Source: Klebsormidium nitens
Lineage: Eukaryota; Plantae; Klebsormidiophyceae
Direction of reading: 5' to 3'
DNA: 64,000 nt
Assembly: GCA_000708835.1 (NCBI GenBank)
Contig: DF237293.1
Location: forward strand, 34,551-98,550
The notes beneath the pieces were generated by a model. That model searched no databases. It saw nothing but the letters and a program-made list of their open reading frames with translations, and was not told the origin of the DNA. Shown piece after piece: positions 1 through 7,600 of the stretch (position 1 is its first letter; each line of letters begins with the position of its first letter). The position numbers and the translations under genes were made by a program.

Positions 1-472
1 AAACAGCAGTTGGCAGATGACACCATTGTTTGGAGCTGCCGCGGTTGATCACCTTGGGGTTGAATAGTGTTGGAGCTGACAACATCAGGAGAGAAGGCAG
101 AAAGCTGACAGCTCATTCAAAAACATGACAGCTTATCTGAAAATAGGGCACTGTGTTTGTTCAGGAGCTAGTGTTTGCGATCAGCGAGACCCACAAGCGT
201 TTGTGCAACTCTTCCGTGCGTTCGCTTCAGACAAGGCATCCCCTCTTTGAGGGGAAGCAAGTTTAGAGAGTGGGCAACGAGCTGTGACGTGTTTCATCAC
301 ACGCCGCCTCCTCCAGTTGAACAAACACAGGGGCTGTTTGAGCGGAAAAGAGATCCAGCGACAGCGGAAGGAGGGGGGTGGATCATCACCGAGTATCAGG
401 GAGGGGCCAGAGTAGTGAAAGTGGGAAACAATCTGCACTGCGAAAAGAGGGAGGGGGGAATTTGGTGCAAGC

Positions 473-3154
473 ATGGCGGTACAGCTGCATCAGCTGGGGG
501 CGGTTATGCAGTACGTCGTGTTTGGGATCTCCGTTGCGCTCGCCCTCTTCTTCATTGTGCAGACACGCCGGAAAAATGTCAACTGGGAAAGTGAGTCGGT
601 ACTACTTGAGTCAACCTTTGCTGTTTTCCTTCTCTCATTCTGATTCTCTGTAAGTGAGCTCTAGTTTTGTAGTTGGTGCACTTTTTAACTAGCTTGAATG
701 GGGCAGACTTTCAGTAGGTTAGCAAGGGACACTGCCCGAAATTTGATGAGTGATTCGAGGTAGTTTACTTCAAACAACTAGCTAGAGCTGGCATAGCAGT
801 GCTTTGGTTCCGCCATCTGAAGTAAAGTGAACCTCTCACTCACCTTGGAGGCAAAAAACTCCCTCTTGCTACAGGGAACTTGGGTAATCCTCATTCCACA
901 GAGGCTTTCATTATACTTTTATGCTTGTCTAGAGAGCACGCCTCTTTTGCATCATCTTACGAGAAGGCAGACTGGCCATTGACTGAAGAGCTAGTACGTC
1001 TGGAGTCTCAATCTCCCAATTCTACTGGAGGAAACTGGAGGAATTCGTCTGATTGTTCGACCAGGTTTTCAAGGTCATCGTTGTCAGACTGCATCCTGGC
1101 TCGTTGGGTGTCTACTTCTGCAGAGCACTTCCGGAAACATTGAAGTCGGATATCAGAAAAGCACTGGCTCGTTCAAGATTTGCTGCATAAGATATCAAAA
1201 GCACAGATGTTGTGGTTTCTCCTCACATACCCGGGTAGTTGGGCTAGCGTTTCATAGCGTCCAGTTATGCACGTTGGGCGAACTTTGCTGCTGAATCTGT
1301 TCATGACGACTTCTGTGCCCAACTTTGGGTGCATAAGCTGGCCTCAAAACAAGATACCGTCTTTCAGATGGCGAGATACAGACAATTGGCAGTTTAATGT
1401 CGCTTGCAAACATTCCTGCTCCTTCTAAACTTTGCTGGCACTTGCTGTTCGGGATTTTTCAATCAAAGCGGCCCCTTCAAGCCCCTCCCAAGTTCTCTTT
1501 GGTTTCCCTGGCCCTCGATATCAACACAAATACTGTTATGGTACTACGAGCAGTGGCCTGATGGGCTTCCGTTTGCAACTCCCTTGACGCTACCCCAGAT
1601 CGTCAAAAGACTGTCCACTCATGAGTTCCTGCACTCGTTTTTTCAGTCCACGATTTCATCTAGGTCGTTGTTAAGCCTTCATCTACCTATTCAGTCGTCT
1701 GTGAACACCGTCTTAGCCTCTGCTAACCTTCTCAGCTCTCCGTTAACCCTGCAGTCATCTTTGCCACCGCCGCCCTCGCGACCCTCTACATGCTGGAGCG
1801 TCAATGGGGCCCCGCCGGCCCCGCTGACATCAGCATGACGAGTTCGGGGCGACGGTTGCCGTGGTTCCGCTATGGGGAGTGGCTCCTGACGTTTCCTCCG
1901 TTATTGGCGGCGGTCGCAAATCTGACGGGGCTTGGGAGGCGGAAATGGGGCCAAGGAATGGCTCTGTTGGGCGCGCTCCAAGTTGCGCTTCTGGGGGGGG
2001 TCACGGCGGCATACAGCACGGGCCTTGCGGCGAAGATTGTTTTTGTAAGTGGGCCCTTGAGCCTTGACGTCGAGCTGACGTTATGCTGCGGCCTGCAATA
2101 ACTGACATTGATATTTGTCTGACTGTGGCGCTCTGTCAAAATGGAACAGCGAGCAAAGCGCCTCAGCTCGAAGGTGGCTAATGGTGGCGACCGATGAACC
2201 GATTGCAGTATTTGTTTTGGTGGCCGACGCCGCCGCCTGTTTGATCATGTCCTGATTAGTGTCGTCAATCTGAGAGATTGCGTCCGGACATCAAGTTTTC
2301 TAGCCGAGACTCATAATCGAAGGATCCAACGCACCAGACTTAAGGCCTGGGTACGGATCGAGCGTAGATTCACTGAGCTCATTTCTCCAATCGAAGCTCT
2401 GCAATGATCTGATTTGCTGACGTTGCTCATTCTTTTCCTCCAGGCGTGCATTGCGGCAGCTGCATATGCTGTTGTCCTTGTGCTGACGTCACTCACCTTC
2501 GGGCTGACGTATCGTGAGGTGCCCCTCTCCCTGCGGGGCTTCGTGTCGCTCCTGCGCGCCCTGCTGCTGCTGACGTGGCTTGTCTACCCCGTCACCTGGG
2601 CGCTCGGTCCAGCAGGTGAGGAAAGCATGATGTCAGCGCCACGTCACCAAAGCCGTGAAAGCTTTGAAACAACAAGCCGTCTTGCGGGTACATGATGAGA
2701 ACAATCCGTATGTTACGACGACTGGATCGGCTAGCCTGGGCGTCACGAAGTTGGTCGGCCGTAAATTTGCACTGGACGAGCGTTCTTATGCACAGGAAGC
2801 CTGATGCGCCAACAATGTGTCGTTTCTATCTGAAAACCAGTCCAGTGTGCTAGCCTTACCACTCCACTGTGCTAGCCTTACGAGTTCGCAACAGTCTTCT
2901 TTCTGCTGAGAAAGCGTCCTGCTTCTTCATCAGAAGCCTTAACACCAATGTCCTCAAAGCAGATTGCTGAACGCTCCTTGTCGAACGGCCTCTCCGCAGG
3001 TTTCCGCCGGATCTCCTTCGACGGCGAAACGGTCGCGTTCGCTTTTGCGGACATCTTCGCCAAGTGCGCCTGGAGCGTTCTACTGTGGTACTTCCGCCGG
3101 ACAGTCCAAGTGTCCGTTCCGGCGCAGTTCTGGGCGACGCAGGCCGACGCGCAG
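473..3154 (+). CDS. Channelrhodopsin-family microbial rhodopsin, 7-TM core (exons ~473-590, 1755-2044, 2444-2615, 3000-3154)
   Basis: Exons join in phase (a|tc, phase 0, g|gt) with GT-AG ends. The product aligns almost gaplessly with CrChR2 as recalled: QYVVFGISVALALFFIVQTRRKNVNWE (TM1), PWFRYGEWLLTFPPLLAAVANLTGL (cf. WLRYAEWLLTCPVILIHLSNLTGL), TWLVYPVTWALGPAGF (cf. SWGMFPILFILGPEGF), ADIFAKCAW (retinal Lys, codon 3062-3064). The start is uncertain: ATG 473 or an upstream frame-1 extension. Confidence 0.9.
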
Positions 3155-3771
3155 GTGGGCGGGGTTCGAAAGGTTCTCGTTCTAGTTAACCAATAAGCTC
3201 AGGGTCTCACCGAAGCTGACTCGAAGGATCACGCGCTTTGCACTCGTACTCATCCTTACCCCCGCACTCATCCCAGCCGTCTTTATGGGTGTTCGGTGGG
3301 CTTATGATTCACCCATCTGAATCTGATTGGCATTCGGCATGTGGGGACCAGGATTTAAGTTTGGAGTTCGGGCGTTTGTCCGGAAACATTGTGATCGCCA
3401 CGCGCGACCAATTTAAGCACCATCCAATAACACGTGTTTCAATTTAGAAGCTAGCTAGAAGCACGCTGTTGCCCGCCAGAAAATCTACACGTCACCCTGC
3501 TCTGAGTGGATGAGCAGACTCTTCGTGTAAGTTCGACATGGCGAATCTATCTTTCACAACGTCGAAAACGAGTATGGTGTTTCTGCGTCAGCCAAGCCGA
3601 ACCCAGCTGACGTACGCTGTTTTTCTTGTTTTTGGTCTCCGCAGGCCGCCCGGGCCGCCTCTTGGTAAGCTGCCATCGCCCAGCCGACGTTTCAATAAAA
3701 GGTCGCTGTAGAGAATTTGTCAAAGCAGAGACTTGAAATTCTGAGTCGTATGCTTCTTTTCCTCTTGGCAG

Positions 3772-6700
3772 GCTGCGCCGGGCGCCGTCGGGGATACCGG
3801 AGTTGCCCAGCAGCTCCTTGGCAAGGGAGATCCGGTGCTTGTCTCCGGGCGCCGTTTTCAGCCGGCGGTCGCGGAAGTTGGAGAGGGATCCCCCTCGGGC
3901 AAAGAGCCGCTCCTATTGGAGGAACCAGAGGTCAGGACTTTTTCTTCTGGCATGAAGAGACCTTCGATTTGCGCGTTATCTTTTTGCATCTCTGCTTCCA
4001 CAGCGTTTAGTGGAAAATGTGTTGTGGACTGGATGCAGACTGGCGAAGCCGTGGATTTGGACACCTTCGAGCTCTCGAACACATTGCGCTTTTGGAAAAG
4101 CCCAGCGCCTGCGTCCTTTGCAGTCCGCGCAGCAAAATTACGGACGAATATAATCCGGAGAGACGTTTTGTATCCCATTCGCTCGCAAGCGTGTACTTTG
4201 AATGTCTTGAAGGAGTCTCAAGTCCTGCCTTATCCTTGATTTCTGCGCAGGAGGTGCCGCTGACTGGCTGGCCGCTCGGGCTCGCACGTACGCGTGTGCA
4301 CGTGGCCCCCCGTGACGTCACCCGCCCCCGCGCTTCTCCCCGGTTCTGGTTTCCCGGTCTCTCCGATCAGATCCGCACAGAACAGGCGGCCTACAGCCCG
4401 ACCGGAACGCCCTTTCCGGTCACTCGGCCCTCGTCCCTTCTTCCGAGCCCCAGACAAGAGCTAGAAACGGCGGAAGGGGTGACGGTCTACCGGAATCCGC
4501 TGGCTCTGACGGAATCCGGAGAGCAGGAGGTAGGCGACGCGGCCGTCGCGCGCGCGCGCGGGCGCGAGCTCGCGATCGATATTCCGGGGGAGGGTTCAGG
4601 CCAGCGGACGCCGGAGTGGGGCGGAGCGGAATCCTCTGAGGACCGGAAACGGACTTGGGCGGCGTTTATCCGCTCTTTCGGTGCGCAAAAGTCGCCTCCT
4701 GAGACCAAGTCCGAGGAAGGCGAAGCCGGGTACAAAACGCTCGCCCGGCCGGAATGGCCGGGCTCTATTTCGGCGCGCAAAGAGCGCCCGGGGGAGAGTC
4801 AGTCTCGGTTCTGCCTGCGGCGACGGCCGAGGAAACCACACTCGCTTCGGAAGTTCCGACACCGACCAGCCGGCTCGAGAGAATTGTAAAAGGGCCGGAG
4901 GGATCCGGGGTGGACTCGTCCACCATGACGTCAGCGTCGAGAGCCTCCCCTTCCATGCTGACGTCAGCGGTCAGCCCGCCCGTTCCGCTGGTCGAGAGGG
5001 GAACCCCGCGCGCGACGCCCCGGCGGCGTCCGCTGCCGTTCTTCGATCCGGAGACCGGGGAAGTTAACCGGGGAGTGTTGGTGGATCCCATTGACGAGGA
5101 GTCTCCAGTGCCTGACGTCACGGAAACGTCACCGGTGACCTCATCCAGGAGGCGCCGGATGAGACGATCGGGAGTGACGGCGGAAGGCGATAGCGACGTC
5201 GACAGTTTTGATTCCGTTGGTTCCGGCATGGAAGAGTCCGACTCCGGGGAGTCAGGGGGCGGAATCTACATCGAAGAAGCAAAACCCAAGTTTAGAGTAT
5301 TCTCAGGGCGCCCCTTAAAACCCGATGCGGGCAGCCCTCCGGTTACCGTAATCCGGTCCCCGGATACCGGCGCGGCGGAAGCCGTTTCTCGGCGATTGAC
5401 GTACGAGCCCTCGGGGCCTTCCCCCGCCCCCGCGCTCGTAGGACAGCTTTTTCCGGCGTCGAAGAACTCGCCCCCGGGCGCAGAGGCCGAACTTTTCGAC
5501 GAGGAACGGCGGCGAGGGGACGGCCTGATCCTGGCCCGCCCCGCGCGCCGGCGGTTCGGGGACGCGGACCCGATGAGCCCGCGCGCTCGTAGGGTTTTGG
5601 GGCGCGAGGGTTCGGAGGGTTCGGGCGCGTCTTCGTCGCCGCGCGGGTCGCGGGGCGACATCGTAAGCCCTCGAAGCAGGAGCGGTTTGTCGCGCAGCCA
5701 GTCGGCGGAAGACCTGAACAGGGGGGGCATCTCCGTGAGTTTTGCACCCCCCCAGAGGCGGGCCGGCGGCTCGTTCGCGTACTACAGCGGGGGAAAGTTG
5801 GCGGACGTCCGGAGCAGCAGTTCCGAGAAGGACTTGTGAGCATATCTTTCTGTGACACGCAAACGAAAAAAGAGGATCATGCAGGGAGACGCAAAAGAAT
5901 GAAGAGAATCATGCAGGGCAGTTGTCGATTGTTGATCAAACCCTCAACAAACCCGCATATCTATTCGCGAGGTTTCTTAACACTGAAGCCAACGTCTCAT
6001 TTCCAAAAGCTTTGCTAGAAGCTCTTGAGTGTGGCAGAGGGCTCTTGATGGTCGATACGCACTGTTTTGGCAAGCAGATTTGCTCTTCATCTTTTTGTTG
6101 GACGCTTTTTTGAAATCGCTAGAGCCGTTGGCAGGCTACGTGCCACGTGTTCCATCAAAAGTAATTTTTAGATTGTGGAAGCACATTCAAAAGGTCTTCT
6201 ACAATCCTGAAAAGAATCTTGATGTGGACAACCCCTAGCACAGGTTCAGGGGCTCGACTTGGTCTGGGATTGAAAAGGTCTTCGGGACACTGTCAGTTGA
6301 ATTTGAAAGTTAGGTTTGAAGTCTATTTAACCTTTATGTCCAGAGATGAACGTGATACGTACGACCGCTCCAGATTGCAGGATCTCGAGCTTTCCAATCC
6401 TACTCTTTTTGGCCACTACGTATGGAAAGTTACGGACAACTTTGAGGTCCCCTTTCCAAGAACGAATGCTTCCTTTTGTCGATCACCTTTACACACGCGC
6501 GAAGCGTCCTGTTGAACGTTGACGTCCCTCTTGTCGCATCCACCGCTAAGGAGCTCTCTTGAAAACAAAACAAACAAACAGCTTTCATCCATTCTATCCG
6601 CAGTTCCGACTATTGGGGCAGAGTCACCGGAACTCCGGCGTCCATTCGGTCACCGGAGGCCGAAGCGGGCCCAGCTTTGGACGTTCCGTTCGTTCCGGCG

Positions 6701-7600
6701 CGCAATGAGGGGCCGGAATCATCCGCCACGGTGGGGCCTCAGGGTGACGTCGGCTTTGGGCAGCGTGAAATCAGCTTTGAGGAGCGTGCCGTCGGCTTCG
6801 CGGGGGCTGACGATAGGTTGCAGCGGTACGGCTCGAGTGGTGTTAGTTTTGAGAGTGACATCAGCGCGGTGCGGAGTGATCCGGGGCTGCTCCGGCGGCG
6901 ACCGCCGGAAGCGGAATTCCGCCCGGATCTCGGCCGGAGGTCGCTTGGGAGCGCGGAGTTCACCTGGCAGCTCGGTGACGCATCCGGGGGGGACTCGGAC
7001 TTCCGGCGGCGGTCCTTTCCGGTTCCGCAGTCCCGCGACCAGCGGAACGCAACGGAAGACATGCGCGAGTTTTTCCCCGCTGCGCCGGCGCGGCTGCTCG
7101 GAACGGGTGAAAGAGTGTCAATTTCGCGGCCGGACATTTCCGTTGAGCTCGAACCGCGGATTCCGGGCCCGGCACCGGAAGCGTGGGAGGAGGGCGCCGC
7201 TCAAGAAGTCTCCTTCCAGCCAGAAGCCGAAAGGGATCTCAGCGGAATGACAATGACAGTACAAGCGGGTTCTGACAGCGGGGCGTTCCGGTCCGGAGAG
7301 AGCGGCATCGAGGCATCGAGCGGAAACGGAACACTGTCGAGTCTCGAGAGCGGAGCGATCGAGCAGCGGATCTCAGGGCTTGGGGAGGAGTCGGCGCAAT
7401 TCGCCGGGCGCAATACGAGGCGGCCGTCCCCTTACTATTATTATTCCGGGGACGCGGTTACTCTTCCACCGGTCGCTTCTCTGGGAAGATTGGAGCCCAT
7501 TGTCGAAGTCGGGTCGACCCCGGAAATGTCCCCCGAGTCGGCGGAGATGCGGCCGCGGACCGCGATCCGGTTCTATTCGCCGCAGTTCCGCCGGCGGTGA
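3772..7600 (+). CDS. Probable long low-complexity C-terminal tail of the opsin (exons 3772-3930, 4251-5835 with a frame break near 4790, 6604-7600)
   Basis: Acceptors at 3771, 4250 and 6603; donors at 3931 and 5836 (tt|GTGAGC, phase 2, matching acceptor cag|t at 6604). Long S/P/E/R/G-rich ORFs at 4251-4889, 4754-5839 and 6604-7600. Linkage to the opsin is inferred from phase only. Confidence 0.55.

Follow-up and report, generated by a model that had tools for sequence, protein, structure and literature searches.

A channelrhodopsin-family gene of Klebsormidium nitens that keeps the retinal pocket and has lost the DC pair and the central gate

In the solved structure of channelrhodopsin 2 (ChR2), C128 and D156 oppose each other across transmembrane helices 3 and 4 (TM3/TM4). 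The gate formed by these two residues, the DC gate, governs closing kinetics (PMC13739731), and in the channelrhodopsin (ChR) KnChR from Klebsormidium nitens the equivalents of E90 and N258 build the central constriction; the mutation E87Q slows closure of that channel (PMC12177036). The homologs PsChR4, TaChR, TchChR and the streptophyte CiChR, in all of which the TM2 glutamates are depleted, produced no channel currents when expressed in HEK293 cells (PMC8406140). Here we describe a gene on the forward strand of a 64-kb stretch of K. nitens DNA (contig DF237293.1, positions 34,551 to 98,550), which is called the window below and supplies all coordinates. In its product the Schiff-base lysine, the two counterion carboxylates and the aromatic pocket are intact, while the DC pair and the central gate are replaced. 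The K. nitens NIES-2285 locus is a real, expressed and correctly spliced gene, the second of the channelrhodopsin family in this alga besides KnChR.

The novelty implied in the preliminary description was overstated: Govorunova et al. 2021 (PMC8406140) list an identical protein in their Data Set S1, on the sheet 'Known ChRs'. The entry gives the organism as Klebsormidium nitens NIES2285, the class as Klebsormidiophyceae, 'Tested?' as N, neither name nor accession, Rozenberg et al. 2020 as the source of the sequence, and the remark 'can be N-truncated' (PMC8406140). Its 350 printed residues, compared by eye, equal the spliced translation of exons 1-6 through all five junctions. The entry ends there and is not discussed, whereas the present model comprises seven exons and the full 1158 residues with a complete N-terminus. 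Also added here are transcript support, orthologs at three loci, estimates of selection, a count of exceptional substitutions across the family and conserved motifs in the tail. The sequence itself is already known.

Comparison with described channelrhodopsins

The protein was proposed to be a channelrhodopsin-family opsin, and this assignment is upheld by the best solved-structure matches overall, KnChR (E 1.4e-10) and CrChR2. The Pfam family PF01036 Bac_rhodopsin matches exons 2, 3 and 4 at consecutive profile positions (61-129, 132-187 and 194-223 of 224), and K215 lies in TM7 with D211 four residues earlier, which together with a rough check of hydropathy places the protein among the microbial (type 1) rhodopsins. 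The family motifs NLTGL, GWE-type and LGP-x-G are present. Exon 2 scores 44 bits against KnChR, 39 against CrChR2, 21 against GtACR1 and 20 against bacteriorhodopsin; KnChR is also the best solved-structure match of exon 4, and that of exon 3 is haloarchaeal bacteriorhodopsin-I, not a channelrhodopsin. Among 1.8 billion library proteins, every full-length match is a ChR. Judged by its sequence, the protein belongs to the green-lineage (chlorophyte-type) channelrhodopsin family.

The alignment with CrChR2 (PDB 6EID) is nearly gapless, as first described: BLASTP returned 224 columns for 223 residues at 30% identity, and the motifs RY-x-EWLLT-x-P and D-x-x-x-K are common to both proteins, next to NLTGL and LGP-x-G. 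Relative to CrChR2, the window protein has no N-terminal extracellular domain, DC pair or central gate, and three of the five glutamates in TM2 are missing. Its TM6 (W-x-x-Y-P-x-x-W) and TM7 (A-K) are bacteriorhodopsin-like (Y184, W188, A214). Residues were mapped in MAFFT alignments with 17 and then 70 representatives of the green-lineage channelrhodopsins, and every earlier assignment was reproduced. In ChR2 numbering, Q56, S63, E82, E97, R120, E123, W124, T127, N137, D253, K257 and R268 are kept, and the replacements are E83I, E90L, K93L, E101G, C128F, H134A, D156L, N258C and H265W. Realignment cannot restore the lost C128, D156 and E90 equivalents in TM2-TM4, because TM3 contains no cysteine, TM4 no acidic residue, and TM2 has glutamates only at the E82 and E97 positions.

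In place of the DC pair there are F86 and L114 in the window and two phenylalanines in the orthologs. From the central gate (S63/E90/N258) and the TM2 glutamate ladder (E82/E83/E90/E97/E101) only S20, E39 and E54 are left. The TM3 motif was previously given as E-T-F and set against the D-T-D of bacteriorhodopsin, which mixes two positions: the three-letter motif comprises bacteriorhodopsin 85/89/96, that is ChR2 123/127/134, and the DC-gate cysteine directly follows T127 (PMC13739731). In the correct register the phenylalanine occupies the DC-gate position (bacteriorhodopsin T90) and the motif reads E-T-A, like that of roughly half the family. It is neither the DTD nor the DTE of outward proton pumps, whose carboxylate positions are D85 and D96 of bacteriorhodopsin (PMC13739731), and the D96/H134 position is held by A92. 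Anion ChRs carry a non-carboxylate at the counterion position D85 of bacteriorhodopsin or E123 of ChR2 (PMC8406140); the window protein and all orthologs have a glutamate there (E81).

Which of these replacements are exceptional was judged by residue frequencies among the 70 representatives, with denominators that vary by position. E90 is glutamate in 61/61, C128 cysteine in 66/68, D156 aspartate in 67/68, N258 asparagine in 66/70, G185 glycine in 65/67 and F230 phenylalanine in 70/70. The clade of the window protein and its orthologs has L, F, L (window) or F (orthologs), C, Y or F (Y144 in the window) and W at these positions, and this six-residue set is limited to it. In the TM6 motif, the last position is phenylalanine in all 70 representatives and the tyrosine position is phenylalanine in 63 of them. 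In contrast, position 83 is valine in 41/60 members, position 134 alanine in 34/68 and position 265 tryptophan in 34/70, working channels included, and eight members have glycine at position 101. On these counts E83I, H134A, H265W and E101G are ordinary family variants. Therefore, the claimed loss of the DC pair and of the E90/N258 gate concerns positions that are invariant or nearly so and is borne out, and the 'inner gate' changes, previously counted as special too, are not: by these frequencies the distinctive feature is the DC-pair and central-gate loss.

KnChR (PDB 9J7W; GAQ79757.1) comes from the same organism. It resembles the window protein in its short N-terminus and long C-terminal tail, in the proline at Q117 and in keeping the equivalents of E82 and E97 and the two counterions. 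KnChR, a proven cation channel with a FimV-like tail region, keeps E87 (E90), N255 (N258), C126 and D154, whereas the window protein has L, C, F and L at these positions and a tail without a recognisable domain. The depleted TM2 glutamates are common to the window protein and to CiChR, PsChR4, TaChR and TchChR. CiChR is similar also in having leucine at E90 and alanine at S256, but it keeps D156 and N258; PsChR4 is likewise without C128 and D156. The Chlorodendrophyceae homologs differ in that they are also without E123 and T127 and have the aspartate three residues before the lysine.

In the published tree the window protein has a branch length of 1.50 and groups with the Chlorodendrophyceae proteins PsChR4, TchChR, TsChR2 and TaChR (support 68), and the next node adds CiChR from Coleochaete (support 91) (PMC8406140). 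The source rates PsChR4, TaChR, TchChR and CiChR as tested and non-functional. Our own tree is unrooted and comprises 19 domains, without non-ChR rhodopsins, CiChR, PsChR4 and KnChR. Here the window protein and its complete ortholog, L002, form a pair with 100/100 support on a stem of 3.5 substitutions per site, which joins an unresolved polytomy with prasinophyte-type cation ChRs (the A134, W265 type), outside the well-supported CrChR1/2 group. At E <= 0.001 the search with exon 2 returned canonical cation ChRs and neither CiChR nor the Chlorodendrophyceae homologs; since these relatives were unmatched, the losses of gate residues may be independent.

Gene structure, tail and orthologous loci

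The four opsin exons of the preliminary description (473-590, 1755-2044, 2444-2615 and 3000-3154) are matched exactly by joints in Logan RNA contigs: 590/1755, 2044/2444, 2615/3000 and 3154/3772 were seen in four runs of two studies. A further RNA joint connects 3930 to 4251, and RNA contigs past 5835 continue with letters identical to 6604-6633. Every intron is of the GT..AG type and is supported by RNA, which answers the earlier call for a check of expression and splicing. The gene was thought to extend to 3154; exons 5-7 (3772-3930, 4251-5835 and 6604-7600) carry it further and add a tail of 913 residues behind the 245-residue opsin domain with its seven TM helices. Assembled with one extra G inserted behind 4750, the seven exons give 1158 codons without an internal stop. 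Opsin exons 1-4 translate to 39, 96, 57 and 51 residues, and introns split the codons a/tc (Ile40) and g/gt (Gly194). The features are as follows, all on the forward strand (+), with ChR2 residues in brackets.

300..472 (+): transcribed 5' leader; RNA coverage without a joint to 590, stops before Met1
473..590 (+): exon 1, coding for Met1 to E39 and the first base of I40; very short N-terminus and TM1; by alignment Q13 (Q56), S20 (S63), E39 (E82)
1755..2044 (+): exon 2, TM2, TM3 and TM4, from RNA joints, Pfam and alignment; L47 (E90), E54 (E97), R78 (R120), E81 (E123), W82, T85 (T127), F86 (C128), A92 (H134), N95 (N137), L114 (D156), A117 (T159)
1775..1777 (+): codon of L47, the central-gate glutamate position (E90), by alignment
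1892..1894 (+): codon of F86, the DC-gate cysteine position (C128), by alignment
1976..1978 (+): codon of L114, the D156 position and partner of F86, by alignment
2444..2615 (+): exon 3, TM5 and TM6, from RNA joints and Pfam; bacteriorhodopsin-like pocket motif W181-x-x-Y184-P185-x-x-W188
3000..3154 (+): exon 4, TM7; D211 (D253), A214 (S256), K215 (K257), C216 (N258), W223 (H265), R226 (R268)
3062..3064 (+): codon of the Schiff-base lysine K215 (K257), also in ortholog L002
3065..3067 (+): codon of C216, the N258 position and partner of L47, by alignment
3772..3930 (+): exon 5, start of the tail (cytoplasmic), from RNA joints 3154/3772 and 3930/4251
4251..5835 (+): exon 6, main tail exon, from RNA contigs; the genome frame breaks at 4750/4751
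6604..7600 (+): exon 7, end of the tail with stop TGA at 7598-7600; RNA ends match, and the C-terminal motifs are kept in L002

Between 300 and 590 the RNA is collinear with the genome and two in-frame stops stand upstream of the ATG at 473, and the start Met-Ala-Val is common to the window gene and the three orthologous loci. Therefore, ATG 473 is the true start, the N-terminus is complete and the catalogue remark 'can be N-truncated' can be dropped. A micro-exon candidate at about 3643-3665 with splice-like sites was rejected, because RNA joins 3154 straight to 3772. One RNA contig of 3193 nt reaches about 806 nt beyond position 300, past the window start, so that either the 5' leader is near 1 kb or an unstranded contig is fused with a neighbouring transcript. 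The leader region 126-406 shows 71% identity to the orthologous locus L001.

The composition of the tail is biased towards S, G, R, P, A and E. No Pfam family matched any of its four pieces at E <= 1, and the tail contains no recognisable effector domain of the kind found in enzyme- or kinase-linked rhodopsins. Compared with L002, it retains more than ten short conserved islands, among them a 30-residue block from 'PRFWFPGL', 'RELAIDIP', 'GPEGSGVDSST', 'TPRRRPLPF', 'DSFDSVGS', 'RRRSFP', 'RRPSPYYYYSG' and the C-terminal 'AIRFYSP-x-FRR'. At 4750-4752 RNA contigs of three runs carry the extra G (GG to GGG), which merges the overlapping genomic open reading frames (ORFs) 4017-4889 and 4754-5839 into one. 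The alignment with L002 continues straight across this site, so the transcript frame is the functional frame. Every DNA contig from the same sample ends at 4750-4752, and the genome record there is either an assembly error or a real variant.

Exon 2, searched against 1.8 billion cluster representatives, found only two close relatives, the exon-sized ORF fragments P0001 (93% identity) and P0002 (72% identity); canonical channelrhodopsins rank next below them, and no full-length protein containing exon 2 occurs among these representatives. A word-indexed protein search with the same exon, in a length range that excludes full-length proteins, returned P0001 and P0002 alone. Scanning metagenomes with exon 2 produced 598 matches to the pattern, none of them a relative, and the exon 2/3 junction of L002, searched as an exact string, was not found. 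The contigs of P0001 and P0002 and one cluster member yielded three orthologous loci: L001 carries exons 1-2 and a portion of exon 3, L003 has exons 1-3, and L002, on a 194-kb contig, spans the entire gene. All of them preserve the positions and phases of the introns as well as the splice sites. These comparisons place orthologs in at least two other lineages.

All loci have in common E82, leucine at E90, E123, T127, F128 and leucine or phenylalanine at D156, and D253, K257 and C258 are present in L002, the sole locus that includes exon 4. The odd residues are thus seen in the orthologs: leucine at E90 and F128 in all loci and C258 in L002, with phenylalanine at the D156 position. Two residues before T127, L002 has phenylalanine and L003 leucine. 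In both L001 (4826-5332) and L002 (3944-4252) the opsin is preceded, some 5 kb upstream and on the opposite strand, by a Peptidase_M48 gene, so that the neighbourhood is syntenic; the corresponding region falls outside the window. Positions 4400-4576 of the window are matched with 5 differences in 177 bases in a DNA run labelled as a different organism, so that a further close relative carries the gene.

The ratio of nonsynonymous to synonymous substitution rates (dN/dS) between the window and L001 is 0.07-0.11, with a synonymous divergence (dS) of 0.45-0.63; against L002 it is 0.15-0.18 at a dS of about 1.1, near saturation. Exons of the window and L001 are 87% identical, whereas the introns are unalignable. 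Low ratios and unalignable introns next to such exons indicate that the opsin domain is under purifying selection and not in decay. The possibility of a pseudogene raised in the preliminary description fails on this ground and on the presence of transcripts. A gene that is expressed, spliced and kept together with its tail in several related algae does something.

Possible roles: slow photoreceptor, channel, relic or pump

Retinal is most likely bound as a protonated Schiff base, because K215, E81, D211 and R78 are kept and surrounded by the bacteriorhodopsin-like cage W82, W181, Y184, P185 and W188. The events that follow light absorption would differ from those in canonical channelrhodopsins. 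The hydrogen-bond switch C128/D156 would be gone (F/L in the window, F/F in the orthologs), F86 and L114, or phenylalanine in the orthologs, would pack as a hydrophobic pair, and with A92 there would be no cytoplasmic proton-donor carboxylate. Reprotonation, recovery and the photocycle are expected to be slow, since neither the C128/D156 pair nor a donor at H134 or D156 is present. The E90/N258 gate would be replaced by the apolar pair L/C, and as only two of the five TM2 pore glutamates remain, the canonical cation pore is expected to be largely hydrophobic. Output would pass through partner proteins or the short motifs of the tail, and not through a light-gated cation current. We tentatively favor this reading, a slow, non-conducting photoreceptor with output via the conserved tail, and hold it at a little under even confidence. 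The description 'non-conducting or signalling' given earlier is something we likewise infer, and it gains indirect support by analogy with the published non-electrogenic homologs.

Several observations weigh against a non-conducting photoreceptor. The retention of E82, E97, E123, D253, R120 and R268 leaves room for a channel with an altered gate. The published grouping with non-electrogenic relatives has 68% support only and joins long branches, and TM3-TM4, read by eye, looks nearer to canonical cation ChRs than to PsChR4. That the relatives showed no current in HEK293 cells may be due to poor expression or trafficking. The bulky phenylalanine beside the retinal and Y144 at G185 might hinder chromophore binding. 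L002 has glutamine at R120 (CAA, in a JGI metagenome contig) and the 98%-identical L003 arginine (CGA, in a Logan contig), a difference of a single base (L002:10034-10321 versus L003:3884-4171), and both loci have glutamine at E97; parts of the counterion network are thus not strictly conserved. Finally, the maximum-likelihood dN/dS of the concatenated window-L002 pair is unstable (0.63 with a dS of 0.27) and disagrees with the NG86, YN00 and per-exon values.

For the clade as a whole, K. nitens and a few close relatives, one would propose a channelrhodopsin that was converted to a non-electrogenic, slow-cycling sensor signalling through conserved tail motifs; this is possible but doubtful. 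A functional shift in the past, conserved thereafter, would account for the long stem and the low dN/dS that follows within the clade. Homologs that give no current are usually dismissed in catalogues as non-functional, and the window gene is among the least studied of them. Its host is a model streptophyte alga, land-living and with non-swimming vegetative filaments. If light sensing without conduction were true, the gene would show a channel turned into a sensor, and the conversion would give the 'non-functional' green-lineage ChR homologs their first defined biological role, in a terrestrial streptophyte.

One would argue that the protein is a working light-gated channel with unusual gating, a very slow and highly light-sensitive natural 'step-function' conductance that suits a non-motile terrestrial alga. 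ChR2 mutants engineered at C128 and at D156 remain conductive and take very long to close. The conserved charged residues E82, E97, E123, D253, R120 and R268 are in agreement with this proposal, as is the presence of H134A, H265W and E83V/I in roughly every second family member, functional channels included. The likeness to the step-function opsins lies in the lost C128-D156 interaction, which sets closing kinetics (PMC13739731). However, those mutants conduct with E90, N258 and all TM2 glutamates in place, whereas the replacements in the window protein are bulky and hydrophobic and the central gate is lost as well: E90 (61/61) and N258 (66/70) are gone together with K93, E83 and E101, leaving TM2 largely apolar. 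Other glutamate-depleted homologs gave no channel currents (PMC8406140). We consider a conducting protein rather unlikely; a current through a hydrophobic gate without a DC pair would make it a very slow channel of natural origin and of interest to optogenetics.

A relic that is no longer a photoreceptor, expressed for a light-independent structural or scaffolding role or slowly decaying, would explain the bulky F86 and Y144 in the retinal pocket, the R120Q replacement in one ortholog contig and the frame break in the tail of the genome assembly. It is improbable in view of a dN/dS of 0.07-0.18 across the opsin domain and because orthologs preserve the Schiff-base lysine, the two counterions and the complete aromatic cage; moreover, the frame is intact in the transcripts and, in its corrected form, kept in L002.

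Light-driven outward proton transfer, as a weak pump or an intramolecular charge displacement without a channel, is very improbable: TM6 and TM7 are bacteriorhodopsin-like, exon 3 best matches bacteriorhodopsin-I and chlorophycean homologs keeping only Glu82 gave small non-reversing hyperpolarising currents (PMC8406140), but there is no cytoplasmic donor carboxylate in the E-T-A motif, the release-group glutamate equivalents differ ('GPAG/DGET' in the window, 'GPEG/DGAT' in L002) and a 913-residue tail is atypical of pumps.

Relation to KnChR and other K. nitens rhodopsins

The notion that the protein is KnChR itself or a KnChR allele is refuted: KnChR is its best solved-structure match and is cited to the scaffold accession DF236986.1, the one that labels the window gene too, but the match is distant (44 bits over 84 residues of exon 2), KnChR has TCP, D154 and E87, Data Set S1 gives KnChR its own separate row (PMC8406140) and the 64-kb window holds no second opsin. 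This settles the question, raised in the preliminary description, whether the gene is a distinct paralog. KnChR is cited as GenBank DF236986.1/GAQ79757.1, and the label of the window gene in the published tree is Klebsormidium_nitens_DF236986. The common accession label and the single opsin in the window imply that the paralogs share a scaffold without being adjacent.

We found no publication in the literature that names or tests the window gene, and other papers on K. nitens rhodopsins name KnRh1, KnRh2 and KnRh3 (= KnChR) only (PMC7693036, PMC7902849). A preprint (10.1101/2024.11.15.623698) uses a K. nitens proton-pump rhodopsin, 'KnR', which is the rhodopsin of the 2Photron voltage sensor. 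It was considered as a candidate for the window gene and set aside: it is described as a proton pump and is probably a different gene. The rhodopsin set of K. nitens is larger than the three usually named genes.

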